DNA from: Podarcis erhardii
Taxonomy: Eukaryota
Reading direction: 5' to 3' (one strand)
Length of the DNA stretch: 64,000 nt
NCBI GenBank assembly: GCA_964252035.1
Contig: OZ176205.1
Part shown: positions 1-60,736 of the stretch, in pieces
Layout of the letters: the number at the start of each line of letters is the position of its first letter
Numbering within the stretch: position 1 is the stretch's first letter
The notes under the pieces: model-generated
Seen by the model: the letters and a program-made list of their open reading frames with translations, nothing else
Database searches by the model: none
Told to the model about the DNA's origin: nothing
Made by a program: the position numbers and the translations under genes

Positions 1-1372
1 CCTGGCTCTGCCCATGGCCCATGCATGAGGAGCTGTGCGGATCCCAGCCCTGACTGGTTCAGAGGACTGTGTCCTGGCTTGGAGGAGCTGTCTGCCTCCT
101 TTGTGGGGATGCGGGAAAGGCCAAGACTACACCTTCGCCTTGCCCCAGCCTTTGGCTGAAGCCCACCTCCTGATCACTAGTCAGTTCTCCACAGTGCCCT
201 TCACAGGTTGGGGAGGAAGTGTGAGTGTGTCATGGTGCCTGGCGCAGCGCTTAGGGGTCCTGGGCACAGCCAAGCCCCACTCCTGGCTGGAAGGCACTGA
301 GAGCAGAGAAACCTTGTGCAGGTTCTTGAACCTCCCTATCCTCTCCCAGAACTTTTCACAAAGCGGCATCCCTTAAGGATCCCGGAAGTACAGTACAGGT
401 AGTTGTTTTCCTTTCCTCTCAGTGTGCAAGAGTGCCGTTTGAGCCTTCCTTCCAGGGGGTGGCCTGGCCTTACGACAAATGCCAGCTCACAAGGTGTCCA
501 GGTGGTTCACTCGTGCCCAGCTGAGGAGAAGCTCTTCCAAAGGAGAAGCTCTCATGGGCCTGGCCACTGCCCACCTCCATTCATGGCTTGGTGCTGTCCC
601 CCTGCTGGGCCCTGGGTGTCACTTCTGGCTCCAGTAACACAGGGGTGTTTTATACAAAACCCTCATTAGAATACTTGAGTGCTTCCTGGGTTAGTGTGAC
701 AGGTAGCCTGTCTGTCAAGGGACAACAGGTCATTCTTCCTAGCAGTGTTTGCTCTTCTGTCTGTGAATGGGGAATATTGGTTGGGCAGTGTGTGCTTCAT
801 TTCTCAGCAAGGGTGGAATCAAAATGGCATGGTTCGGCCTACTCTCTGGTGTGGGCTAGCTCCTCTTTTTTACAGGCACCGATGGGCCTATGGCCATGGC
901 TACAGAACAGAGGAAGGTGAAGTTGGCTTCTTGCTGCCTGTCCCCTACCTCTCACCTCCAACCCACTTACCCCATACCAACCCTCACTCACCAATCAACC
1001 TTCCCGCCATCTGCCAGGCAACCTGCCGTTGACCACTCATCGTGCCCTCTTTGTCAAGCTGCCATCTGCCACCACCTGAGGCCAGGCCCCTGGGTCCGAC
1101 CGTCTGCTCATGACACATGGTGGCCGTGTGCCTAATTCCTGGAGCTAGGAAGCTGCTGGTGTCCCTCATCTCTGGTTATGGTGCCTGGCAGGTAGAATCT
1201 CCTGCGCCGGTCCACTTTGGGATGGCAGCTGGGCCAGGCTTGAAGCCAGGCACCAGCGTGTTGCACAGCCCAGGTGTTGGTGACTTTTGTACATTTGAAT
1301 GTTTTGATCCCTTTTCAAGCCTATGGTGAATGCAGCACTGGTCACTACGATCAGACTTTTGTATTCAATAAA
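1..1372 (+). other. Probable 3' UTR of an upstream gene (B4GALT2 expected by synteny)
   Basis: No coding exon recognisable; ends in AATAAA at 1367-1372. Human order is B4GALT2(+)-CCDC24(+)-SLC6A9(-). Identity is inferred from synteny only. Confidence 0.3.
1367..1372 (+). terminator. Candidate polyadenylation signal AATAAA of the upstream gene
   Basis: gtattcAATAAAgtttc. Confidence 0.4.
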
Positions 1373-1623
1373 GTTTCAAAACTTGGGAGACTCCTTGCCT
1401 ATGGGATTCAGGTGGGGTCTGTGGATAGAGGCAACACTGCAGGTTTATGCAATCTATCTTGGCAAGGTACAAAATTAAGAATTAAATTAGTTTCCAAATG
1501 AATGGCACCTCATTGTGCTTCCCCAACATGTTTGTTTAAAGCAGGGACTGGGTTTTCTGGCCCAGGAAACTCTGGGCGTAGTTACTCAGCCCAGAAGACG
1601 AGAGAACTATTCTACAAGGTTCT

Positions 1624-1629
1624 TTTATT
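1624..1629 (-). terminator. Candidate polyadenylation signal (AATAAA) of the VWC-domain gene
   Basis: TTTATT on + strand, ~470 bp downstream of the TGA at 2098-2100. Confidence 0.5.
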
Positions 1630-1734
1630 GATGCTCACACACAGAGAAAAACTGTTAAATAGTAGCAAAAGATGCTATGTTTAGTTGAAGCTGGAGTGGG
1701 AATGTGGTGGTGGTTGGTGGGTGATTCCCTAAAT

Positions 1735-1857
1735 CATATGGGGAACCTCTAGCTCTCAAGATGTGGCTAAATTATTCCTAACCATTAGCCACGCTGGCTA
1801 CAGCTGATGGGAGCTGGGAGTCCAACTATATCTGAATGGCCACAGGTTGCCCACCCA
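1735..1857. mobile_element. hAT-type MITE in the 3' UTR of the VWC gene
   Basis: Palindromic core, degenerate GGGAACC...GGTTGCCC termini; flanks CCCTAAAT (1727-1734) / TCCTAAAT (1858-1865). Confidence 0.55.
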
Positions 1858-2097
1858 TCCTAAATAAAATGGGCTTTCTCATATGAGCTACTCCCCTGTG
1901 TAATAACTCTAGACATTGTCAAGGGAAAGGGGGTAGATCTGGAAAGGGGTCTGCGACTGGCAATTGCTTATGTGTATGGTTGAAGGAGTTGGGCCAGGGC
2001 TGGGTGTAAGGGCACACTAGGGCTTGTCTGGGTAAGCAGAAGCCTTGCAGGTGCTGAAGAATGGCTGGCCCAGGAATTGTTTGGTGTTTGGAGCAGC

Positions 2098-2282
2098 TCA
2101 GGTGTGATGTGCACCTGTAGCCCGGCATCCCCGTAGCCGCTCACATTTAGCTAAGCGGTTTCCTTCCCAGTAACCGGCGTCCTGGCCATCATGACAGCGG
2201 CAACGGGTGCAGGGCCCCACCCATATGCTCTCCCCAGCAGGAATTACATGTTGCTGGCTCCCATCCACGTAGCAGTTGGGCC
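2098..2282 (-). CDS. VWC-family gene, last coding exon (GPNCYVDG...GAHHT*)
   Basis: Acceptor ctctccacAG at 2283-2285, TGA at 2098-2100, 185 bp. Confidence 0.9.
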
Positions 2283-5200
2283 CTGTGGAGAGACATGTCC
2301 ATGTATTAGAGTCTGCCATTGTTTGCAGAAGTCTCATCATGACTTTTAGAAGCAGAAATGGCAAGCAGTTTAAGAGTACATGTGTAGGTGGGGGCAACCC
2401 AGCCAGATGGGCGGGGTATAAATAATAAAATTATAAATTATTATTACTCCAGCCTTGCACCCCTATCCTCTACCGGGAGCTCACCTAGTGCCTGTTCGTC
2501 CACAGGTTCTGTGCTACAGGCTGCTTTTGTACCAGGAGGACATTTTTCATTTTGGGGGGAGCCCCTCTTCTAACACTAGGGCCAAACACCTGCCAAATCC
2601 TTCAAGATGAGGTGGGGGCTACCAGGTGTCCCACCATCATTTCTAAGTAGGAGGCTTCCTGTTCAGTTAAGCAACCTTGTGTCTGGTCAGCTTGGCCCAA
2701 TTCCTCTCACTTCCCTGCTCCAGTAGGACAGGGGCCCTGAACAGCGAGGGAGACAAAGTTCTCTCCCCCTTCTGGACAGCTTGAAGTGGAACACTTGTCC
2801 CTTGCTGTGAAGGTGTGTCTTTCTCACCGTCCTCACAGGTGGGGCAGCAGTGGCCCTTCTCGTAGACTGGATTGACACAGGGCGGAGGGGCGCAGTCTGC
2901 CACTAGGCAACGAGCGATGCCATCTAGGTCACAGGTACACTGCTCACACTCTGAGGGCTGTGAGAGACAAATATTGGTCAATAGAGCAAGGCAGCTTTAC
3001 GTGGACAGCACACGGTTATGATGATGATGATGCAGCTCCAGAACTATTTTGCATCAGTGGTGCAGAAGCTTATTCTTTTCTGAGAATTGCATTCCCTTGG
3101 GAATCTGTTCAGAATTGCATGCCAGTGGTGTGCTGGTCCAGAGTCAAAGTGGGTAGGGCACCTCGTCTGCTACCCTGTTTCCCTCCCCCTTTTCCTCCTA
3201 ATGAAATTAGGCTGAGAGAAATAGGTTACCCATCCACCCCACACCACCAGGTTGCAGAATTGACTGGATTTTGCAGTTCCAGAATGAATTAGTCATGTCT
3301 TCTGTCTGTAACTTGCAAAAAGAGATGTGTGTATGCAAGCAGGTGGGAAACTCATGCCTCAGATACTTAATTGGATTAGGCTCCTGGCTGCATCTTTGCT
3401 TACCTGTATCTGTGCTTTAAGCTTCAGGGGAGGGGGTGATCCCAAAAGAAATATAAGGCCCATCATCTTCCTTTTTTTGTAATGTGTGAAGAAGCATTCC
3501 AAACTGAATGCATAGCCATGGCAGTACTGGGATTATACCATCAGATGGCACTATCAATCAAGAATTGATAGATAATGAGGGATGAAAAGCTTCTGTCCCA
3601 ATCTCCCTTGACTTTGTGTATCTTGTCAGCTCTGGTCAACTCAAGATTACTCTCAAATAATCATGTGGCTGGCCACTGGGAAAATTGACTGGTCATAAGA
3701 AAATGTTGAATAGAGAAAACTGTGAGTGAGTGAGAGATTGTCCCCAGTAGCACAGAACCATCAAGGATCCCAATATGTTAAAAAGGCCCATGAATGTGTT
3801 TTGGAACCCATTAACCAATCAAGCTCCTCCTTAAAATATCCAGCAAAGGATACTGAAGTCATTTTCAGCACCTCACCTCTCATTGCCTTCTCACTTGCAA
3901 AACATGAGGTAATTCTAGCCAAGCCACATGCTTTTGTTCTCTGCCCTAAGGGGAAAGGTCCAAGATTCTACCTTCTGTCAAATTCCCTCCCTCCTGAACT
4001 AATAGATTGGTTGTCTGATTTCACACCTTCAGGGTGGGTGATGATAAAGACTGGGCTCCACTGAAGTTCAAGTGGTTGCAAATAAAAACATTGGTCACTT
4101 GTTCTAGATCACTCGTCACAATACTTTAAAACAACAAAGCTGGAAGATGGCATCAACATTTAACACCAAAAATCATATCTTAATGATGTAATTGTCCATG
4201 ATCATCTTTATAACTCCAGGGAAGGAGATTGCACAACTTCACTGGCAAGTTGATATCTTGTTCTTACTACAAACCTGCAGTACAAAGGAAAGTGTTTACC
4301 CTTCCTAATTACAGGACTTTTCTCTCTCTAGGTCTACAGCACTTGTCTTGCTTGTAGGCAAATGCAAGATAACCTAGTTCCAGGAGGTGCTGGGAAGCAG
4401 CCCTATATTATTGTATCCACCACCCAGATGTTCTGGACCTAGAGCAAAATGGCCATCCCTAGTAAAGAACTGAGAAGCTTTGACTGAGCAAAGTATTTTA
4501 GGGCAAGTTAGGCCCCAGCTAAATGGTTCTGGATAATCAAAAGCTTGCTTGCTATTATATGATATTTTGGTTGGCCATAATAAAGTTATTATTTGGGGGG
4601 AAATTATGGCTCAATATGGCTTTGCAGAAAGCATTTACTTTCTGTGTACCTTTCAATAGAATTTTGTGTTTGGGTAAATGGGACAGGCCAAGAGATAAGT
4701 CATCAAACAGACACACAATAATTTGGTGTTTAGCTAACGGATAATTCACCTAGGAAGAACCCCAATGCCCATTCTTTGACTATATGTAGCAACTGGTCCT
4801 TTCTTCATCAATACACTTATTTTTTGCAAACACTCAATTCATGCTATCCAAAGAGGCATGGAGCCCAGGAATGGAGGGCTTTGATCTTCCACCTGCAGCC
4901 TCAGGGCCAGAATTTGACTCCCTTCGGCTAGTGCAGGCGTAGTGCCAAAAATACTCCTTTCCGAACCCACCCTCAATTGTCCAAGTCAGCCATGCTAGAG
5001 ATTGTTTGGTCTGACTCAAGTCCTAAAATAAACTACACACATTTTTGGCAGCAACAGACAATAGCCAGAAGCAAGGTCTGAACAGGTCAATGTCAGGCCT
5101 AAGAAATGGATGAAAATGAAATTCAATTAGTCAAAGGATGCTCAGCTAGGTACTACAGCCAATAAAATTGCCTTCTGAATTATTGGTTTTATGGGAACAT

Positions 5201-5916
5201 CTTAAGAGCACCTCCAGCTTCATAGAGCACTTTTGATTTGGTGCTTCTCGCCCACTTTGGAAAAATGCAATTTATTAGTTTTGTTTGTATTTTCTTTTGC
5301 TTCAGCCAGTAATGAACAAACTATAAAGACACAGCGTTCCTGCTTCCAGTCTCTTACTCTCCTGCCTAGGCCTCCCTTTCAGAACAAGATTTAAGAAACA
5401 GAAGGGACTGCTTGAGATTCTTTTTCAGGAGCGTTCGCTTTTTCTCCTGCTTTTGAATATCCTCACTTTGCCCATCCATCACCTATTCATCCCTGCCCAC
5501 CTCACTCTAGATTCCTTCTCATGCCACCCCTTTGCCTAATTCTCCCTTGAATGCCTTACCTGGAAATGCTGCCCCAGCTCATACACTTGTCCACGGTGCT
5601 CACAGCCAACCCTTTCGCAGCGTGGGCAGCAGTCGCTGGGGTAGTGGCTGACGTGAATGCAGGCAGGTGGCAGAGCGGTGCAGTCCGTGCGGGCGCAGGC
5701 GGGCCCCTCCGCTGTGCACTCGCACTGGGTGCAGTGGTCACTGTCCAGGAAATACCACTCCCCAACATAGTACAGGCTCCCGTTGGCATCGCACGTGGTC
5801 ACTGGCCCTGCCAGTCCTGGGATGGGCACCAGAGTCAGCAGCAGCAGCAGCAGCGCTAAGCTCAGCTGTGCCAACGGAAAGGGCATCGCTGAACTCGAGG
5901 GACAGATGCCGGGCAT
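2098..5916 (-). CDS. Secreted von Willebrand factor C domain protein, Brorin (VWC2/VWC2L) family paralog; join(5560..5916,2828..2957,2098..2282); 223 aa from ATG 5916 or 213 aa from ATG 5886
   Basis: Signal peptide (LSLALLLLLLTLVPIPGLAG), two complete 10-Cys VWC domains and a truncated 6-Cys third repeat. GT-AG introns in phase 0 (FQ|PSEC) and phase 1 (DG|PNC). Motifs PSxCExCxC, CxVADCAxPxCVNPVYExxxCCPxC and GPNC...IPAG are shared with VWC2/VWC2L. Confidence 0.93.
2388..2446 (+). mobile_element. L2-type LINE 3' tail fragment
   Basis: ggggcaacccagccagatgggcggggtataaataat.. matches the tail at 7010-7097. Confidence 0.7.
2828..2957 (-). CDS. VWC-family gene, middle coding exon (PSECEQC...CCPTCEDG)
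   Basis: Acceptor tctctcacAG, donor G|GTGAGA, 130 bp, phase 0 to 1. Confidence 0.93.
5560..5916 (-). CDS. VWC-family gene, first coding exon (signal peptide, VWC1, start of VWC2)
   Basis: In-frame ATGs at 5916 and 5886; donor CAG|GTAAGG at 5560/5559. Confidence 0.92.
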
Positions 5917-6850
5917 GGGAGTTGGCGAGAGGGAGGAGCAGAGCAGCAGCAGCAGCAGTAGGGAAGCGAAGCGGAGGAGAGCTGGCGGGGAAAGTGGGCA
6001 TCCAGTCCGCTCCAATGCCGCCCGCGGGGTTGCCTGCTGAAGCTGCGGCTAAGAACCGCCCTGGCGTGCCTCGGCCTTTGTGCAGCCGCCGCCCGGCCCG
6101 GTCCGCCCCTTCTTGCAACCCGAGCCCGCCCAGGGGCACAACACCCCCTCCCCAACCGAGCGGGCGGGACCGGGGCGGTGGGAGGGACCTGGCCCCCTAT
6201 CTGCACCTCAGGAAAAGCCTGCTAAGAAAAGTCCACTGTGCTCCCTCTCCTAACCCCTCGAACACTCATCCGGGCAGCGAATGCTGCGTCTCCCCAGTTC
6301 CCAGTCTCCGCGGCCTCCAAAACACGCGCGGCGCTGGATCTCTCCCCCCCCCCCCATTCCTAGGAACATTAATGGGCAAAGAAAGAAGTTTCTCAATACT
6401 GTACTGTTGCCAAAGCGTAAAGCCAGTGGGACCCCTTCCGGATGAAAACTGGCCGACGTGTGGCTGCTCTTTACCTCCGATTGCTTGGGTGCAAGCGCGG
6501 GCGCACCAAGAGCTTCAACGCACACGCTTCCTTCCCCCGGGACCCCCGTCTCCACGCTCGACCGACATCCTGTCTGCCTCGTGGGCACGGCTCCTTTAAG
6601 AGGCGAGACTTCAGAGGAACGCGGCGGGGCGTTTCCATGGAGACGGCGAGTTTATATTCCAGAGAGTTAGAGGTTGGAGGGGGCTCGGATAGGGCAAGAC
6701 GCCTGGCCCTCTGCCCCTCCGCCCGGTGTCGCAGGTGAGGGCTACCGCAGAGTTATGTCCGTGAGTCCGTAGTGAGTGAGGAAGTGTGGGGAGAGTAAAA
6801 GGTCTGGGGCGGAAGTGGGCTCGGGGGGCCGAGACGTAGGTGAGTTAAGC
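5600..6850. promoter_or_regulatory. CpG island / probable bidirectional promoter of the VWC gene and CCDC24
   Basis: Only long CpG-dense stretch in a CpG-depleted window; GC boxes (6162-6176, 6806-6811), ETS-like GGAAGT (6811-6816), G4-prone GGGCGGGACCGGGGCGGTGGGAGGG (6162-6186). Confidence 0.8.
6600..6839 (+). other. CCDC24: Candidate non-coding first exon of CCDC24 (start approximate)
   Basis: Strong donors AG|GTGAGT (6839/6840) and CAG|GTGAGG (6734/6735) at the island edge; the ATG exon has an acceptor at 8075/8076, so an upstream exon is needed. Confidence 0.4.
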
Positions 6851-6902: not shown

Positions 6903-7053
6903 TATAAACAACTACCTGACATTCAGAAGACATCTGAAGGCAGTCCTGTTCAGGGAAGTTTTTAATGTGTGACATTTTAATGTATTTTTAATCTTTGTTG
7001 GAAGCCGCCCAGAGTGGCTGGGGAAACCCAGCAAGATGGGCGGGGTACAAATA

Positions 7054-7097
<44 letters not shown>
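6903..7097 (+). mobile_element. 5'-truncated L2 LINE 3' end with (TAA)n tail
   Basis: Encodes INNYLTFRRHLKAVLFREVFNV* (L2 ORF2 C-terminus), then 3' UTR and (AAT)n at 7054-7097. Confidence 0.85.
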
Positions 7098-7100
<3 letters not shown>

Positions 7101-8107
7101 CGATTAACGGGAATTAGTATGACTCTCGAGGTTAATGTGAAGGGATGAGTTTGGTATATGGAGAGCAAGAAAAATTATATGCTCTTATACTCTGGTGGCC
7201 CACGTGGGAGAAAGGTGAGTGCAAGTAACATGATTTGTAGACAGTAGTGCAACTCAGGGGGAAAGTACAGAGCACCACAAAAATGGGGTGCCTCAAATGG
7301 CCATCTAGAGAGTGTCAGGTGATGGAGTCAGGAACAAACGACCTGTGGCAGCACCTGGGCTGTCATGGGCATGTTGTGGTCTATTGGCACTGATGGTAGT
7401 CACAGCGGCATCCTTGTTTTCTACAACAGTTTTAGTCAGAGGGTGGTTAGCCAGACATGTACATGGCACTCAATTCTATTTTTTACTTTTATTTTCATCC
7501 TTGGTGCCCCCCCCCCAATAAACGTGTCTAACATCAGGGCAGCAGAAGCAAATTCCATTGTATTCCTGTAATGCTAGTGCTATGACTTAAGTGAGTTTAG
7601 AATGTGAAACTGTACATGCTCAGAGTATTTCACAACCATTTATCTATTGTGCTAATGTATCAGGAATGTAGGAGCAGTTATAAAACATGGGAATGGCTTA
7701 ACTGACAACTGACAAATGTAATATGTGTGGCTGTCTAATGGGAGAGGTGTGTAAAACCATGGATGTGGCCAGGATTTTAGTTGGGGAGGGACAAAGTTGT
7801 TGAGCTTTTCTTGGGAAATCATGGGTGAAAATACATCATAAATAGGACATTGCGGGGGGCCAGGCTTCTGTTGGGGGGGCCAGAACCTCAGATAATTGAA
7901 TACTTTCAATGGTTTTCAATATTTGTGAATCTTGGGAGGACAGCAGCCCATGTGCAAAAGCATTAAGTTCAGTGTCTAAAATTACCTAGGTGCACCATTG
8001 CATGTTGCACCAAGTAGTTGTGATGTGGAGCTTCTACTCACTGTCTCATTGGCACAATCTTTTTTTCCTTTAAAGCCTCATTTATCGTGGAATCGGATAC
8101 AGCACCC

Positions 8108-8263
8108 ATGTTGCCCTTGACTGGTGCATCTGGGGAATCCCTGCAGTCCGTACCATCACTCTGGACAATGGTAGAGGAACAATTAGCACCCAGTGAGAGG
8201 CTTGAGGCGAAAGCTATCTTGGGTCATGGCCTTGTGGAACGGAGCTTGGAACTTCATGCTGAG
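8108..8263 (+). CDS. CCDC24: CCDC24 coding exon 1 (exon starts at 8076)
   Basis: Acceptor ttttttcctttaaAG 8075, ATG 8108, donor GAG|GTTAAG. Confidence 0.85.
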
Positions 8264-11200
8264 GTTAAGTACCAAAATACTGGATCTCCTATTCAAAATG
8301 ATTCACAAAAGAGCAGAACAAATAAACCACCTCTCTTACTACACAATTTAGAAGTGGCTGGTGAGTGGTGACAAAGGGATATCTGAATAAAGCATCAAAT
8401 CTAGAGGCAGCACTAATTTTGTAAGGGGATTTGACTGATGAAAGGGTCCGCCTTTCATGTCTATAGATTGAGTGGAGTGGACAGTGCTAAAATTGAGTGG
8501 AGCTAAGGGAGGGCTTATAAATTGTATTAAGCCCCCTTCCACTGAGCAATGGCCACTAGTTTTGGCATACATGCATTTTCATATAGAGTAGCATTCATGT
8601 GTATGATAATCTTGTATGGAGAAAACCTCTGGTTTGCCACTTACATCTGCTTTGAGTGCTGTTTAATTTAAGTGAAAGGAAAGCATATCTGAGAAGGCAA
8701 GTCAAGGAGGGGATAAAATATTGCAACCACCCCCTCCCTATTTGACAAGGTCCCCATTTGCCAGCTCCCAGCTCAGCTGGTTCCTAATGCTTGGCCAGAG
8801 CCCCTAATCCATGCTATTCCAGGCCCTTTGTTCTCCTCCAGCCATTCATGCCCTTTCTTTATTCAGCATGGTCCTGACTGCAGCTGAGAAGAACAGTAAA
8901 CATCCCAGAGGCTTTTCACATGGTAATTGCCTTACCTCCTCCTGAAACCAGAAGAGCAAGCACAGCACACCCTGACAAGATGGCACCTTTTTCACTCTAG
9001 CAGTTCTTCATGTTAGAGCTTTGCTTGAGATCCAGCCCCCCATTGTGATTAGTGACCCCTCCCCAGCCTTTATGGGGTCTCTCACCTCGCTGTCTATTAC
9101 CTCTTCATCACAAGCCTGATAAATGTAGCCCAGGTACTGCCTGTCTCCCTGCTGTGTTCTTGCATGTGTCTCCGCTCCCCTCCCCAATTGGATATCTGAG
9201 AGGCCGCCCAGGGAAGCAGCTGTACCATAACGTTCCTCTTGTGGATGTGTGGGGCCAGAAAGGGAGTTCTGGCGCTCGCCTGCCTTACAAATATCCTGCA
9301 GATATTTTTGCGGCATGACCTTGACTTTCCTCATGGGGGGAGGGAGAGAATGATTGTGGGTGGGCTGTCTGCAGCTTTGCACCTTTTATGGAGTGTACAG
9401 ACAGCAACAAAGTAGTGCCCTCTTGCCAGCTACATTGGAATGACAGTGTCCTGGCTGGTGTTCTTATCTTCTGCAGGCAACTTTGCCCACTTTCTGCAAA
9501 AGAGTTGTGTTTTTTTAAACCTAAAAACTTCACTCTTAATCCTAAAATACACTTCACATAAACTAATAGCCTCATAGTCTGTTCCCAGTCTTTGGGGAGA
9601 TGCAACGTTTTACTGAATTCAGTGTGCTCTCACACACATTTATCACATTTGAGGCATCTTTTATTCCCTTGATGCATGACATACTTCCAAAAAGTTGTCA
9701 GTTCCCTGACTGTGGCCTTTATGAAATGTAATTGTCTACCATCAGGTGAGTAATTAACCCATGGCTAGGTATTGGTTTTCTTTTCTTGCAGGCAGGCACC
9801 TGGCTTGATTTCCAGGTGTGCAGAATAGCAGTACTGGGAATGGGAGTGCAACTTGTATTTTTAGGTTGTGTCAGTGCTTCATCATTTGGGGAGGTGGAGG
9901 GTGGGGGAAAGATTACTTTGAGAAAATTACTGCAGTTTGTGTCAATGTGCACATGTGTGAATTTCTGCATGTGGCAATGCACTGTCCCTAATGCAGTCCA
10001 ACCCCTTTCCTATTTACAGGTGCGGACACTGTTGGAATTACATCAGGAGTTGCAGTCAGGCCGCCTTGGAGTGGAGCAAAGCCCACTGCAAGCAGATGAC
10101 AGCTGGGCCTTGCTGGCAGCTCCCCCCAACCTCAAGGAGCTGGTGAGGGAGGAGATCCGCCTTCTTCTAATTGGCCTACAGCAGAAGGCATCGCAGGAGG
10201 GCAGGTACTGGAGATTGGAAGAGAAGGGACTTGAGAGAATTAAGGGCTGAGTTGAGGGGGAGCAGGTAGTAGGGATAGAAGAAAAGCAAGCAGAATATCT
10301 TAGGACCTGGAGCCTATTTGATATAAAAATGAGCCCATTAGTTTCCAACTGATGTGGCTGGTGGTATTTATGTGTGCGGAATGGGTGAGTTTTATATCAT
10401 CTTTTGGCCAAAGCAGTCTAGATTGAGGAAGCCATAACTATTTGTTATGAGAGGCTTAGAGTTTCATGGGACAAATCAGTTAGGAGGCTAGACAATAACC
10501 TGAATGTCTCTCTTAACAAGAACAGGATGAGGGAAACCTCTGATTCCACGCAGATATAAATAAGTCCAGTGCCACCTAGTGACTAAACTATATATTTACA
10601 CTATTGACACAGTATTCTTTCTCCCTTTGTCTTCTAAGGGTGACTGTTCCAGAAATGCTTACTAGGAAATATCAGCTCCAATGCAATTTAATTGGCAGTT
10701 CCAGTATAGTTTCAACATGATTGCCGCTCGGATGGCCAATGTCCAGCAAAAATAACCTGTACCAAACATATGTTTGCACCACACACCTCCATCTGTAACT
10801 TGCGCTCCCATTCAAGTGCAGCTTGTCAGTTTGTGTGTCTCTCTAGTCTTTTTTATCTGTAGAATTAATTCCAGCCTTACATTCCCATTCTTTGGGTCTC
10901 AATCATATAACCTTTGTCATTCCCACTTAGCTCCCTTACATCATGCAGGAATTGCATTGCTGAGCGCCTCTATCAAGAATGCCAGTCCTGCTAGTGCGTT
11001 TGTTTTTTATGGTGTGTTCAGTCCATAGCCTGAGGCTGGGATTATGTTCCACCTCCAAGTTCAAAGTGAGCATTCATCCAAGTGAGCACTGGGATCAGCA
11101 CCTGCTGGAACCCTTGCCTGAGGATTTGCTCCCTGCCTTAGCCCTGTGTAACCAATGAATAGCTCAGTGAAGGCACGGATTAGAACAGGCTGGCTAGTAA

Positions 11201-14200
11201 GGGATGAGCTCTCAAACTCCTCATGCTGGAGTTGTTTGTACCATGTTGCCATATCGGAGAATCCCTTCACACCCTTTAAACCTTTCTACTATCTCTCAGT
11301 CACAACCTGAAATTCTGCATTTGTTACTTACTTTCAAATAGCTCCCCTCTTGTTGAATTGACATGAGCACAGGCCATGGCTCCCTTTGTTCTGCCTAGAA
11401 CTGGGTGGTCCAATAAATGGCCTGAGGGCTGCATGTAGCCCTCAAGGCCTGTTTTGTTGGCACGGGGCAACATTTGACACCCTCCCCAGCCCTCATGCTG
11501 CCTTCCCAAAGCCAGATAAGCAAGGCACTAGGCTTAGCGAAGGAGGTGTAAAGGATCTGGCAGGGTCTTAAAGGCCTCCTGTCTCCTACCCAAAGGTTCT
11601 GTGTCAAACTACTTTTGTGGTCTACCTTGGTATGGAAAATTGGACCTCATTGGGCTCTTTAGTCCAGCTTGTTTTTTCTTTTAGGCTTCTATTCATTCCA
11701 GCTACTGGGTGGTTTTGTGACCCAGCACTGCCACCAACTGGTCTTCTCTTGTCCTTGTCAGCCCAAAGACTGGGGATGAACAAGACTTATAGTTGTATGT
11801 TTTCTGCTTCACAGGAACCAAGATTGTGCCATCGCTAAATACAGCCCTCATGTGGTCACCTTTGCACTGAAGGCAAATGCTGGCAATAGTCAGTCTTCAT
11901 CTGGGAGCAGTGCCCTAATCAGGTAAGACTGAAGGAAGCTGCAGCCTCCACACAATGAGCTTCTGGGCTGTGACTTGTTCTTACCCGGAACACCATGAAC
12001 TGTATCATCACAGGAGGTCTCAGAATCCAGGACTGATTTTGTCTGTAGGAAGCCCAACACCACAGAGTGCCATATGCCATAGACTTAGAAACCTAGCAGC
12101 GATAGGTTCTTTTTGCATCTTGATTTCTGGAGAGTCAATTTCCCTTCTTTTTTGTTCTATGAATTTAAGGAGTTTTTTTGGCTCCTGTTTGTTTGTAGTG
12201 TGATGACAAGGTTGAAATGTCTTGTTTTAATTTACCAATTTTTGAGGAAGTTTGTTTTTTAAGGGATGTCCTCTCCTTTATGTAAGCTCCTCTGATGACC
12301 ACTTTCATTGTGTCCCAGAGAAGGGGGATTGCAATGTCGTCTACATCGTTGTCCTTAAAGTAGTTTTGGAGAGTTTTCAAGAGACTCTCTAGGTAGTTTG
12401 TTTGTGGTTAGGATGGGGCTGAAGGACCATGATTGGGTAGTTTATGCTTCCTCTCCTGTTAGGAGGGTTGCTTCTACTGGGGCATGGTCTGTGATTTTAA
12501 TGTTCTGTGTCTGAGTCCTAAGAAGCATGCTAGTTCGGTTTGATGAATCCCTGTCCTGTGACAGCCATACAGAGAGGATGGGAGTACAACTCATTGAAAG
12601 AGACTAGGGGTCCTGGAAAGAAAATGACTGACATCCCCAACCAAATTCTGTTACCTGATCCTTGTGCCAGTGTCCCATTCAAGCTTTGTTTAGTGCAGGA
12701 ATGCCCAGTTGCAGGCATCAAGCCCGTCTGGTCACAGGAAAATGCAAGTCTCACCCAATTTCTGTTTCCTTAGGCCATTATTCTCCAGAACCGCTAATCT
12801 GGAATCCTTCTGTAATAAACTGAATATTGCCCATATCAGTGAGGTAGCCTCTCAACTTCGGTAAGTTTTTGCTCTTTTAGGTTTTTTACTTGCACAAATA
12901 TTGTAAGAGGGAAGAAGGCACAAGAGGGTTACAGGTATCCGTTGCAGGTGTCTGGAAGGCAGATATAACAGAAGACCTTGTGTCTGAGAACAGTAAACTC
13001 ACTGCAGAGACAGAAGGGAAGCTGGGGATGGCATTGTGTGAAAATGTGTGCAGATGGACCCAAGCAGCTTGTATTCTACCTTCTAACTCTCCCCATCAGC
13101 TGTCTCCCAGTCTGGCCTATACCACAATCATGAAGACAAGGAGGGGCAAGAGTCTCTTTCCAAACTTCCTCTGGGTACAGATATAGTTTCTATGGCACAT
13201 TTTGCTCTGTGTAATTGCAAGGAGTGAAGCAGATGAAACAACAGTTGTGACAGAACTTGGTGGGAAGGGCATAGCATAAAAAGGTGGGAACCTCAAGAGA
13301 AGGTCAAGAAGCAACACAGGAGTGTGGTGTCTAAGCCATACATAGTCTTGGCTCCCAGTGCAATCTCCAGTGGGGAACACACAAAGGGCTTTGTAAAGAT
13401 TCTTCCATCTTGTGCCACTGGGCATCCTACATATTCCAGGCAGTATGGCGTTATTGAAGGGAGCTTGCTCAAGTCCACCCCAAGAAATGCCAGAAAGTGT
13501 TCACCAGCCAGGAACTTGGGGAACTCTGAACAAGGAGAACAGCAGAGTACAAAACAAGGTTTAGAAACACTGTCGGCATTAGAGATACTTGTGCCTAGTT
13601 ACGAACTGCTTCAAAGTAGTGTGGTTTTCTCATCCCTAGCAACATGAGCTGCCATTGCAAGCAGATGGTGGCTATCCTCACATCTAACTTTCATTTGAAT
13701 TGCCAGCCCCTACATTGGGAACGTAAACAAAAAGTGAGGAAGATGTGGAGACACCAAGTCTGCAATGCTGGCAATTGCTTTCTGTCCCAAATGTATCACC
13801 TCCTTTGGGTCTCACTGGCTGTACTATTTTTTCTAGAACCTTGCTAGAGGATGAGTGCTGTGATCTGGAAAGATACATCCCCTATTTACAGGTAAGGGCT
13901 GAACCTTTCTCATCTCAAGGAGGGTCTCTAGAGTTCCTCATAAGCAGTGTTTCTCCCATGCACTTCCAAGCATCTGCTTCAAGTTTTGGTCAATAGGTCT
14001 GTGAGACTGGTTTTTGTTGCAGCTTGGGTGGAGCATCTGCGGCAACATTTCCTCAGCCCTTCTAGACTATTGTGTAAGAACAGAGGCAAGGCTCTGTGGG
14101 ATCTGACCAAAGCCCCATCTAGTCTAGCACCCTGTTCTCACAGATGCTTATAGTAAATTTGCATGCAGGATATCCCCACGGCAAGTCATCTAAGTTGGCA

Positions 14201-16371
14201 CCCATCCCTATATCTCATGGGGGCAACTTCCATAGTTACTTTTGTTTGTCCTGAATGTTGCAACCATCTTCTTCATTGGATGGACCCAAGTTCTAGTATT
14301 ACCGCTCTCATGTCTTCTCTCCTGCCCACGTACATAGGAGCTTGGTCTCAGAGCTGTACCTACAAAGCTGTTCCCATGGCTATGGCAGCCTGGGTTAGAA
14401 CAGAGTGTGGGCAGGCCTAGGGTCAGAACTCTTGAGAGGAGTGACAAGGGTGTTTGGCTTCCATACCAGTTCTACAACTGCCCAAATAGCTAGCTTTTTT
14501 GTTTCCTTCCCAAATCTGGGGGACAGGGAGGGGCTGAGGAGTGAGTGGCAGGAAAACTGTTATGATGATTTGGATGTGAAAACACCATTACATTGGGCTG
14601 CAGGACTGCTGCAAGAGTACTTCCTGTCACCAGTGTCTGATGATGATGATTATTTATTAAAAAACACACCTTTGCAGCAGTACACCCATAGTGCTGAGAG
14701 CTGCCAAGTTATGAAATCACAGTGACTTGTGACTGTGGAATCAGGGTCAAAAGAATTGTAGAACTGCAGTTGGAATGATCATCTAATCCCAATGAATCTG
14801 CTCCAACCTCCAACAATGTAGGCTACGCACTGCTAGAGCATCCCTGAGAAGTGGCCATTTAGCCTCTGCTTAAAAACCTCTAACAAATGAGAGCCTATTA
14901 AGTCAGCCCACTAAGTTTCTATTTTCCAGAAGAATATGAAAAGAGCATCATCAGCTGAAGGGACTGGATATGCTGGTGCCTCTCCATTAGCTTTCTGCAG
15001 CAACTGGGGCAACTAGAAGGCTGGGAGGAAAAGTAAAGTATTTAATACGGGAAGACATTCCAACACGAGGAAAACTTGTAAGCAGAGACATGTACATCTT
15101 TAAGAGAAATGGTATAGTTAAAGGAGCAGCTTCTTTCTTCTGTGTTGTGTTTCCTATAGCATTTTTTATGTTCCACAGTGCCAACTGGAAGAGGCGCATC
15201 ACCATGTTACAGAGCTGCTAGAGGCAACACATGAGCCCACCATGGCTGGTATGCAGAACCCGAGTCTCGGATAAGGCCAGGCTGGGAATTGGGGAAGGGA
15301 TGCAGCATCATGGTGCCTATACACATCATCTTTAGGCAGGTGTTGCCAAGGAGTGGCGTTTGCAGTGGGGCATGGTCTCTTTGTGAGTGCCAGCCCCAAT
15401 GCTCTTCATGATTGTTGCTTCCCCCAACCCCCATGAAACAGGGTCTTCTTTCCACAGAATTACAAGAGGAGAAGCGCGCCATGGAACGGGATTTGCAGCT
15501 AAGCCAGCCTAAGCCAGGCACCAGCCCTTCCCTGATGTCGAAACATCTTGGGAGTAGCAGCTACCAGCCGCAATTCAGGTGAGCCTGCAGGCACCAAAGC
15601 TATGATACCATGAAACTGCATAATATTATAACTGAGGGGTAGCTGTCAAACTGGCGCCTGCAGCAGAGAGGTCCAAGCATAGTTCAGGGTTGGTTTATTA
15701 TTCTATGGCAGGGGTCACCATGCAGTGCCCTCCAAGTGGGGCTGTTGGGAGTCTAACATCTAGAGGGGGCATCTTGTTGGCTCTTTGTGCTGTATGGTCT
15801 CTAGCATACCTGCCATATTTTAAGTAAAAATTCTGGAGTTTGTTCTGTGCAGGACCCATTAGTTCTGCTGTAGTGACTAAGGCTCTTCTGTCCTTGATGC
15901 TTTACATAGAAAGATGCTTGGGCAACAACACCTGCTTCTTGGTAACCCCTTCCTTTCCTTTCCTTTCCTTTCCTTTCCTTTCCTTTCCTTTCCTTTCGCA
16001 GTGGCTTAAGAGGCTCGGCAAAAGGACCAAGCTTTGGAGAGATCAGTCCGGCTTCTTCACCAGCTCTCAGAGACCAGACTTCTCCTTTATGCTATCAGGC
16101 ACTACCCCGGCGGGGCCACTCAGCACGAGGGTCCTATGGATGGCCGCAGCGAGATGGTGAGGAACCCAACCATGCCAGGAAGGACAATGATGTTCTGTTG
16201 CCCAGACCTGTGCTGTCAGTGCCTCTGAAAGGGGGCAGGATTGCTTCAGCCTGCGGGCTGGCAGTAGCAGGGTTGGACCATGTCTTCCACCCCATGCCTC
16301 CTACAGAGCCATGCCCAGTGCCCCGCTTCTGCCCTCGCACTCGGCTGCTGCGATGCAAAGGACCCAGCTAG
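8108..16371 (+). CDS. CCDC24: Coiled-coil domain-containing protein 24; join(8108..8263,10020..10204,11815..11922,12774..12860,13837..13891,15179..15248,15458..15578,16002..16371), 383 aa
   Basis: Motifs PSLWxxVEE..ER.E.K.ILG...V..SLELHAE, LAAPPNLKELVREEIRLLLIGLQQKA..EGR, YSP.V..FAL, LN...I.EVA..LR, LLEDEC..LE, EPTMAELQEEKRAMERDLQ match human CCDC24 from memory. All introns GT-AG with compatible phases; 1152 bp total; position next to SLC6A9 is syntenic. Confidence 0.9.
10020..10204 (+). CDS. CCDC24: CCDC24 coding exon 2
   Basis: tttacAG|GTG; VRTLLELHQE...QKASQEG; AG|GTACTG. Confidence 0.9.
11815..11922 (+). CDS. CCDC24: CCDC24 coding exon 3
   Basis: cttcacAG|; NQDCAIAKYSPHVVTFALK..; AG|GTAAGA; 108 bp. 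Confidence 0.85.
12095..12400 (-). mobile_element. L1/Tx1-type LINE ORF2 fragment
   Basis: YFKDNDVDDIAIPLLWDTMKVVIRGAYI.. resembles the post-endonuclease LWDxxKAVIRG motif of L1 ORF2; continues with frameshifts. Confidence 0.75.
12774..12860 (+). CDS. CCDC24: CCDC24 coding exon 4
   Basis: tttccttAG|; PLFSRTANLESFCNKLNIAHISEVASQLR; CG|GTAAGT; 87 bp. Confidence 0.85.
13837..13891 (+). CDS. CCDC24: CCDC24 coding exon 5
   Basis: ttttttctAG|; TLLEDECCDLERYIPYLQ; CAG|GTAAGG; 55 bp. Confidence 0.88.
14750..14900 (-). mobile_element. Degraded CR1 LINE 3' fragment
   Basis: agaattgtagaa..gatcatctaatcc.. and tggccatttagcctctgcttaaaaacctc resemble squamate CR1 3' sequence. Confidence 0.5.
15179..15248 (+). 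CDS. CCDC24: CCDC24 coding exon 6
   Basis: ttccacAG|; CQLEEAHHHVTELLEATHEPTMA; G|GTATGC; 70 bp. Confidence 0.85.
15458..15578 (+). CDS. CCDC24: CCDC24 coding exon 7
   Basis: tttccacAG|; ELQEEKRAMERDLQ..; AG|GTGAGC; 121 bp. Confidence 0.85.
15951..15995 (+). repeat. (TCCTT)9 microsatellite forming the polypyrimidine tract of the last CCDC24 intron
   Basis: Pentamer repeat ends 6 bp before the acceptor at 16001/16002. Confidence 0.95.
16002..16371 (+). CDS. CCDC24: CCDC24 last coding exon (ends PRFCPRTRLLRCKGPS*)
   Basis: Acceptor tttcgcAG, open in the required phase for 122 codons to TAG 16369-16371. Confidence 0.75.

Positions 16372-18923: not shown

Positions 18924-60736
<41,813 letters not shown>

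Follow-up and report, generated by a model that had tools for sequence, protein, structure and literature searches.

The von Willebrand factor C (VWC) module is the bone morphogenetic protein (BMP)-binding unit of the chordin family, and two proteins that carry it, VWC2 (Brorin) and VWC2L (Brorin-like), are present in native AMPA-receptor complexes; the VWC2 gene lies beside IKZF1. Brorin is described as a secreted neural BMP antagonist in a paper whose reference 17 gives Brorin-like as another (PMC5407822). VWC2L has in addition been found to bind CD36 in a receptor screen by CRISPR activation (CRISPRa) (PMC9578707). Here we describe a further gene of this type, encoded on the minus strand of a 64,000-nucleotide stretch (the window) of contig OZ176205.1 in the Podarcis erhardii assembly GCA_964252035.1. 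It represents a separate deep subfamily of the Brorin family and not a translocated VWC2 or VWC2L, and we put at roughly 85% the probability that it is a functional protein-coding gene, orthologous, as the squamate copy, to a vertebrate gene listed in databases under 'VWC2L-like', 'brorin-like' or zgc:113531.

Joining three open segments on the minus strand of 2080-5900 gave the gene model (coordinates in Table 1). The gene spans ~4.3 kb and comprises three exons and two GT-AG introns (phases 0 and 1), giving a product of 213 amino acids with no internal stop, and both joints are present in all four RNA runs described below; the clean three-exon frame with canonical splice sites reported in a preliminary description of the locus is therefore confirmed. 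A pyrimidine-rich tract and CACAG come before exon 2, and GTGAGA comes after it. The same description had the gene extend over 2098-5916. Its end coordinate is an in-frame ATG that makes a poorer start: the 5916 ATG has C at -3, as against G at -3 for the 5886 ATG, and snake orthologs begin where the latter does, the resulting start (MPFPL...) matching theirs. The polyadenylation signal it noted is borne out by RNA contigs that end at 1608, 16 nt beyond the AATAAA.

The product carries the complete Brorin-family trio of Pfam domains (PF23333, PF23334 and PF23331), in the order VWC2L_1st (E=1.5e-14, 54 bits), VWC2L_2nd (E=4.7e-10, 40 bits) and VWC2L_C (E=4.9e-17, 62 bits), each well clear of the curated cut-off of 27. 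The mature part contains 26 cysteines distributed 10+10+6, that is, two VWC domains with ten cysteines each in chordin-like positions and a six-cysteine tail, in agreement with the two full VWC domains and shortened third repeat proposed at the outset. Across 56 family members, 23 cysteine columns are invariant and one more is nearly so, and all 26 cysteines of this gene's product are kept from shark to lizard; the Pfam matches and the 26-cysteine pattern are well past what chance would produce. A leucine-rich hydrophobic N-terminus, judged by eye to be a signal sequence, precedes the first cysteine, with the mature protein beginning just a few residues ahead of that cysteine. The N-glycosylation sequon mentioned previously is found as N-G-S at residues 35-37 and is kept in most orthologs, though not in Emys or Chiloscyllium. 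As read from its sequence, the product is a disulfide-rich protein of ~186 residues, predicted to be secreted and to consist of two chordin-type VWC domains and a short VWC2L_C tail.

For structural comparison the agamid ortholog (87% identical to the window protein over 212 columns) was modelled instead, using AlphaFold and a 56-sequence family alignment. The model has a mean predicted local distance difference test (pLDDT) score of 85, rising above 90 for residues 41-190, and is all-beta apart from an N-terminal helix at residues 12-26 that corresponds to the putative signal sequence. When this model was compared with the PDB using Foldseek, the tandem-VWC proteins NEL/NELL2 came first (E=8e-7), followed by single VWC domains of collagen IIA, CCN3 and Crossveinless-2 (VWC1, in complex with BMP-2). 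A sequence search of the PDB with exon 1 returned marginal matches only. Crossveinless-2 and chordin have the VWC fold in common with the product of this gene, but they are large multi-domain proteins and the similarity in sequence is marginal (E=0.5).

How does the gene compare with its two described relatives? With VWC2 it shares, besides its predicted secretion, two 10-cysteine chordin-type VWC domains followed by a VWC2L_C tail and 35-45% identity in the core. VWC2, however, possesses an acidic N-terminal region of ~130 residues and a DYRGKGC motif, neither of which is found here, domain 1 and the linker differ by three indels, and the tail of the present protein is longer by three residues at one point and two at another. 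The two also fall into separate clades and occupy different chromosomal neighbourhoods. The preliminary description had reported a 16-residue insertion, DGQDAGYWEGNRLAKC, in the third repeat. This we reject: the stretch has TYEEGTWRIERQAMC as its counterpart in VWC2 and exceeds it by two residues (H-D-G-Q-D-A-G-Y-W-E-G-N-R against T-Y-E-E-G-T-W-R-I-E-R), and with three more residues gained right after GPNC, the alignment shows indels of three and two residues. That description was correct, on the other hand, in stating that the protein lacks the acidic DDYRGKGC linker of VWC2 and VWC2L, a motif absent from this sequence in the alignment.

VWC2L is of similar length (222 as against 213 amino acids) and has the same three Pfam domains. 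The intron placement that the preliminary description gave for VWC2L proved accurate when the zebrafish gene was compared: positions, phases and the 130-nt middle exon are the same. This pattern (phase 0 before P/L-S-x-C and phase 1 at G|PNC) is found in the window gene, five orthologs, zebrafish VWC2L and a Lates gene from a fourth group of the family described below. The differences lie in identity (about 38-41%), in the missing DDYRGKGC motif, in the separate clades that the two form (99/97 for VWC2L, 100/96 for this gene) and in gene size, VWC2L spanning tens of kb (69 kb in zebrafish) and the present gene ~4.3 kb. Isoform X1 of zebrafish VWC2L (L007:2001-71213) contains an extra 105-nt exon between the first and 130-nt exons, adding 35 residues inside the second VWC domain. 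Zebrafish zgc:113531 and the LOC genes labelled 'VWC2L-like' in fishes, amphibians, turtles and squamates are orthologs of the window gene and show no substantial difference from it; a published function was found for none of them in the library searched. Finally, the tunicate and mollusc proteins named 'brorin-like' share with it the C-x-x-C-x-C spacing, a loop before the CC pair that is longer by two residues and a short inter-domain linker; they are ~40% identical, sit on very long branches and, in the case of the mollusc protein, have additional repeats.

To place the gene within the family, proteins were gathered by exhaustive HMMER search, cluster look-ups and a profile search. VWC2 was sampled from mouse, cat, birds, turtle, frogs, caecilians, teleosts and skate, and VWC2L from whale, birds, sharks, bowfin, sturgeon, teleosts, Anolis and Chrysemys; a fourth group from ray-finned fishes, two lamprey/hagfish pairs, Ciona and a mollusc were also included. 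A maximum-likelihood tree was computed with IQ-TREE from 58 rows and 248 columns under LG+C20+F+G4, leaving out one aberrant fragment (P0154). Four vertebrate clades are resolved: this gene (100/96), VWC2 (99/96), VWC2L (99/97) and the fourth group (100/100). A branch with 100/96 support parts the clade of this gene, together with the two invertebrate outgroups, from all others, including all four cyclostome genes. Within that part Ciona joins the clade weakly (92/35) and, given this value and the very long outgroup branches, the root is insecure.

Three shared indel states agree with this placement. The clade of this gene agrees with Ciona, the mollusc and three unnamed homologs in having the C-x-x-C-x-C spacing in domain 1, two additional residues in the loop before the CC pair and a linker shorter by two residues. 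The opposite states are found in VWC2, in VWC2L, in the fourth group and in the genes of cyclostomes. The simplest reading of these sequence characters is that the VWC2-type genes would be a derived clade, and that the present subfamily would have split off before the last common ancestor of living vertebrates. Membership of the zgc:113531-type subfamily is seen in the window gene's position in the tree, in its G-Y-W-E-G-N-R tail motif and in its location between CCDC24 and B4GALT2.

The fourth clade is found in ray-finned fishes only (si:dkey-283b1.7 type; L006:10001-19179 from Lates, P0316, P0321, P0336, P0111 and P0289), has the motif DYRGKWC and is sister to VWC2 (99/93). A Polypterus protein named 'brorin' belongs to it and not to VWC2. 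The Lates gene of this group is flanked by an HMG-box gene and a ribosomal L14 gene, neighbours that are uninformative as to paralogy region. The preliminary description had counted the window gene as the third of its family; its separation from VWC2 and VWC2L stands, whilst the count is relative, given the existence of this fish-only group.

That the gene is the ortholog of VWC2 or of VWC2L, relocated to another chromosomal site in the reptile lineage, as the names 'VWC2L' and 'brorin-like' given to its orthologs in databases and the Pfam domains and intron positions common to it and VWC2L might suggest, is next to impossible. VWC2, VWC2L and this gene form separate clades at 99-100% bootstrap, each with tetrapods. 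Single species, moreover, have both this gene and brorin (Rhinatrema, Geotrypetes, Esox, Leptobrachium and Nanorana) or this gene and VWC2L (Chrysemys), which excludes such a relocation, and a bona fide VWC2L, 92% identical to that of birds, exists in Anolis. Synteny points the same way. The gene faces CCDC24 head-to-head on one side and a B4GALT gene tail-to-tail on the other in pike and in three squamates (garter snake, agamid and boa), and of partial records one from a caecilian shows only CCDC24 and one from Emys only B4GALT, so that the neighbours are identical wherever they are on record. The position between CCDC24 and B4GALT2 must then be at least as old as the bony-vertebrate ancestor, with no reptile-specific move. 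Tree, co-occurrence and pike synteny together lead us to reject the relocated-ortholog explanation.

Two word-indexed protein searches, one with exon 1 and the other with the turtle ortholog as query, recovered full-length orthologs at 60-94% identity from sharks to squamates. These include squamates (Gekko, Phrynocephalus, Candoia, Thamnophis, Pituophis, Pseudonaja), turtles (Emys, Gopherus, Chrysemys, Platysternon), caecilians, frogs, lungfish, gar, sturgeon, many teleosts, and sharks and rays; the agamid and shark proteins are 62% identical. The presence of the gene in zebrafish rests on the source name of the fish orthologs (zgc:113531). Three exons with a 130-nt middle exon are seen in Emys, Esox, Thamnophis, Phrynocephalus and Candoia. 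No bird, crocodilian or mammalian ortholog was found in either search of annotated proteins, which covered hundreds of such proteomes, and this is reasonable evidence, short of proof, that birds and mammals lack an intact ortholog. Of the original proposal of an old paralog kept in reptiles and lost in mammals, the age and distinctness hold up in the tree and the absence from mammals does so among annotated proteins; the restriction to reptiles does not, the gene being found in sharks, ray-finned fishes and amphibians too.

In source records the orthologs are named 'von Willebrand factor C domain-containing protein 2-like', 'brorin-like' or 'Zgc:113531'. Within the literature library that was searched, no paper on this gene turned up, nor any account of it as a separate deep subfamily. 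To call the gene uncharacterised was thus right as to that literature but overlooked its annotation in many genomes, and it is the recognition of a separate deep subfamily that may be new. Two oddities were seen among the entries P0353 and P0072: a Platysternon fragment of the subfamily bears the source name 'lysine-specific demethylase 3B', apparently through mis-annotation, and one fish gene model (354 amino acids) has a transposase-like insert between exons 1 and 2.

Evidence for transcription comes from public sequencing runs. In twelve RNA-type runs from a single organism, and in others from further organisms, about a quarter of the words sampled from the gene region were present, the share expected for exons alone. 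RNA contigs from four runs (X1, X5, X8 and X13) were mapped onto 1300-6500. The joint at intron 1 falls exactly as predicted in all four, and so does that at intron 2, where a joint of 2283/2830 with one extra letter equals the predicted 2282|2828 plus a synonymous G>A change at 2829 (GAC to GAT). In X5 and X13 exon depth is 230-1240 as against 17-18 in the introns (20-70 times), whilst the contrast is smaller in X1 and X8. One contig covers 5560-5876, X1 record 7 spans 5560-6183 and one long contig extending beyond 6500 may join with the transcript of the divergent neighbour. The contigs differ from the window sequence by ~2-3%, indicating that the RNA comes from close relatives and not from the sequenced animal.

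Selection on the gene was assessed from coding sequences rebuilt at five loci (Emys, Esox, Thamnophis, Phrynocephalus and Candoia), with the ratio of nonsynonymous to synonymous substitution rates (dN/dS) computed pairwise on the part from the first cysteine onward. Squamate pairs give 0.05-0.16 by the Nei-Gojobori method (NG86) and 0.10-0.36 by that of Yang and Nielsen (YN00). For saturated pairs (turtle or pike against squamates) only NG86 values were used, and pike compared with squamates or turtle gives about 0.1-0.24 with dS saturated. Five of the seven listed differences between the window and the RNA contigs in exons 2 and 3 are synonymous, the other two being in the variable loop after GPNC. 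Exon 2 is nearly invariant in the alignment of sampled orthologs. The gene is under purifying selection.

These results bear on whether the locus could be a decaying or silent copy with an open frame that has survived by chance. The want of a bird or mammal counterpart would suit such a copy, as it implies that the gene is dispensable in some lineages, but spliced RNA contigs with depths of up to ~1100, as against ~17 for the introns, dN/dS of 0.05-0.16 and the 26 cysteines kept from shark to lizard make it very improbable, and on the strength of RNA and dN/dS we reject it. None of the outcomes that the preliminary description had named as refuting its reading came about: the gene is distinct from the VWC2 and VWC2L orthologs, no intact ortholog appeared among annotated mammalian proteins, spliced transcripts exist in close relatives and the coding sequence shows purifying selection.

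What might the protein do? The predicted secreted product would capture BMP-type ligands extracellularly via its VWC domains and so keep them from their receptors. This is the most likely mechanism because Brorin and Brorin-like are described as BMP antagonists and the VWC module is the BMP-binding unit of the chordin family, and by analogy with these relatives we give BMP-ligand capture about even odds. It is quite possible, if at rather less than even odds, that this is a real secreted VWC protein whose main partner is something else, for example an AMPA-receptor complex, a scavenger receptor such as CD36 or, as in NELL2-ROS1, a receptor kinase. The best fold matches are NEL/NELL2 complexes unrelated to BMP, VWC2L bound CD36 in the CRISPRa screen (PMC9578707) and the near-invariant surface encoded by exon 2 points to one conserved partner. 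Against this, BMP antagonism is the sole activity reported for both characterised relatives in PMC5407822, and the VWC fold is the classic BMP-binding module, with Crossveinless-2 VWC1 in complex with BMP-2 among the fold matches. The near-invariance of exon 2 would fit a single ancient interface without telling which partner is bound.

Several points weigh against the picture of a functional ortholog that acts as a BMP antagonist. The acidic N-terminal stretch and DYRGK motif of VWC2 and VWC2L are absent from this protein, and its identity to them is 35-41% in global alignment and 42-45% in local matches. There are also other partners for VWC domains, as in NELL2-ROS1 and NEL-NICOL (from the titles of the fold matches) and VWC2L-CD36 (PMC9578707). 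The RNA evidence comes from relatives ~97% identical and not from the window's own species, and the absence of the gene from birds and mammals is seen at the level of annotated proteins.

The neighbours of the gene in the window are those that the preliminary description had given, and the placement between B4GALT2 and CCDC24 is upheld by a Pfam CCDC24 match on the plus strand and by blastn matches to the B4GALT2 3' untranslated region (UTR) at the window start (Table 1). B4GALT2 has its stop codon ~11 nt outside the window, ahead of position 1, and its AATAAA at 1367-1372. With RNA contigs ending at 1388-1411 for B4GALT2 and at 1608 for the Brorin-type gene, the two convergent transcript ends are ~200 nt apart. 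The B4GALT2 3' UTR is unusually conserved among squamates (74-90%), with 1131-1397 showing 89.6% identity to garter snake. The gene order reads DPH2/ATP6V0B ... B4GALT2, Brorin-type gene, CCDC24, SLC6A9, which matches that of human 1p34 except for the extra Brorin-type gene.

Table 1 Position of the Brorin-type gene and its neighbours in the window
Feature	Position	Strand	Remarks
Exon 1, coding part	5560..5886	-	327 nt; start codon, putative signal sequence, first VWC domain and beginning of second; then GTAAGG
Intron 1	2958..5559	-	2602 nt, GT..AG, phase 0; joint 2957|5560 in 4/4 RNA runs
Exon 2	2828..2957	-	130 nt; remainder of second VWC domain; most conserved part of the protein
Intron 2	2283..2827	-	545 nt, GT..AG, phase 1; joint in 4/4 RNA runs
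Exon 3, coding part	2098..2282	-	185 nt including TGA; six-cysteine C-terminal domain; preceded by CCACAG
5' UTR	5887..6183	-	minimum extent, from one RNA contig; within GC-rich island shared with divergent CCDC24
3' UTR	1608..2097	-	AATAAA at 1629-1624; transcript end near 1608
Upstream in-frame ATG	5914..5916	-	ten codons before the 5886 ATG; weaker context
CCDC24 exons	8087..10250	+	divergent neighbour; Pfam CCDC24 E=1.2e-10 for 9786-10250, weak match for 8087-8371
B4GALT2 3' UTR	1..1443 (end approximate)	+	convergent neighbour; blastn to Phrynocephalus, Candoia and Thamnophis loci
Last coding exon of SLC6A9-type (SNF family) transporter	19136..19510	-	Pfam E=2.4e-12

Between the start of the gene and the divergent CCDC24 lies a GC-rich island (5600-6800, GC 0.61-0.65) that is probably a shared bidirectional promoter; a block at 6573-6666 within it is 77-81% conserved in three other squamates. 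An out-of-frame upstream ATG at 6001 would, if the 5' UTR extends there, open an 87-codon frame overlapping the main start. Intron 2 contains an interspersed repeat at ~2344-2517 with an AT-rich (ATT/ATA) tail, where RNA contig depth reaches 7000-16000 with many loose ends, indicating a high-copy transcribed element.

A broader and more tentative proposal, which we consider somewhat unlikely as it stands, is that this subfamily would be the direct descendant of a single ancestral chordate brorin-type gene, with VWC2 and VWC2L a derived vertebrate-only offshoot, and that the 'original' gene, with the nearly unchanging surface that its exon 2 encodes, would serve a distinct conserved partner or tissue and would have been lost independently in mammals and birds. 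In its favour are the indel states held in common with tunicate and invertebrate homologs and a place in the tree outside the clade of all cyclostome, VWC2, VWC2L and fourth-group genes. It is not rare for mammals to have lost genes that fishes, amphibians and reptiles retain, and the distribution of the present gene is therefore only moderately surprising.

Under the blanket name 'VWC2L-like' lie at least two further subfamilies, a possible source of error when transcriptomic studies of fishes, amphibians and reptiles transfer function by orthology. The subfamily is present in frogs and, by source name, in zebrafish, making it amenable to knockout and BMP assays. Research into Brorin-type BMP antagonists has taken the two mammalian genes as its frame, to which a third, deeper and highly conserved subfamily (dN/dS near 0.1) would be a testable addition; it bears on the origin of extracellular BMP control in early vertebrates and on what mammals and birds may have lost.

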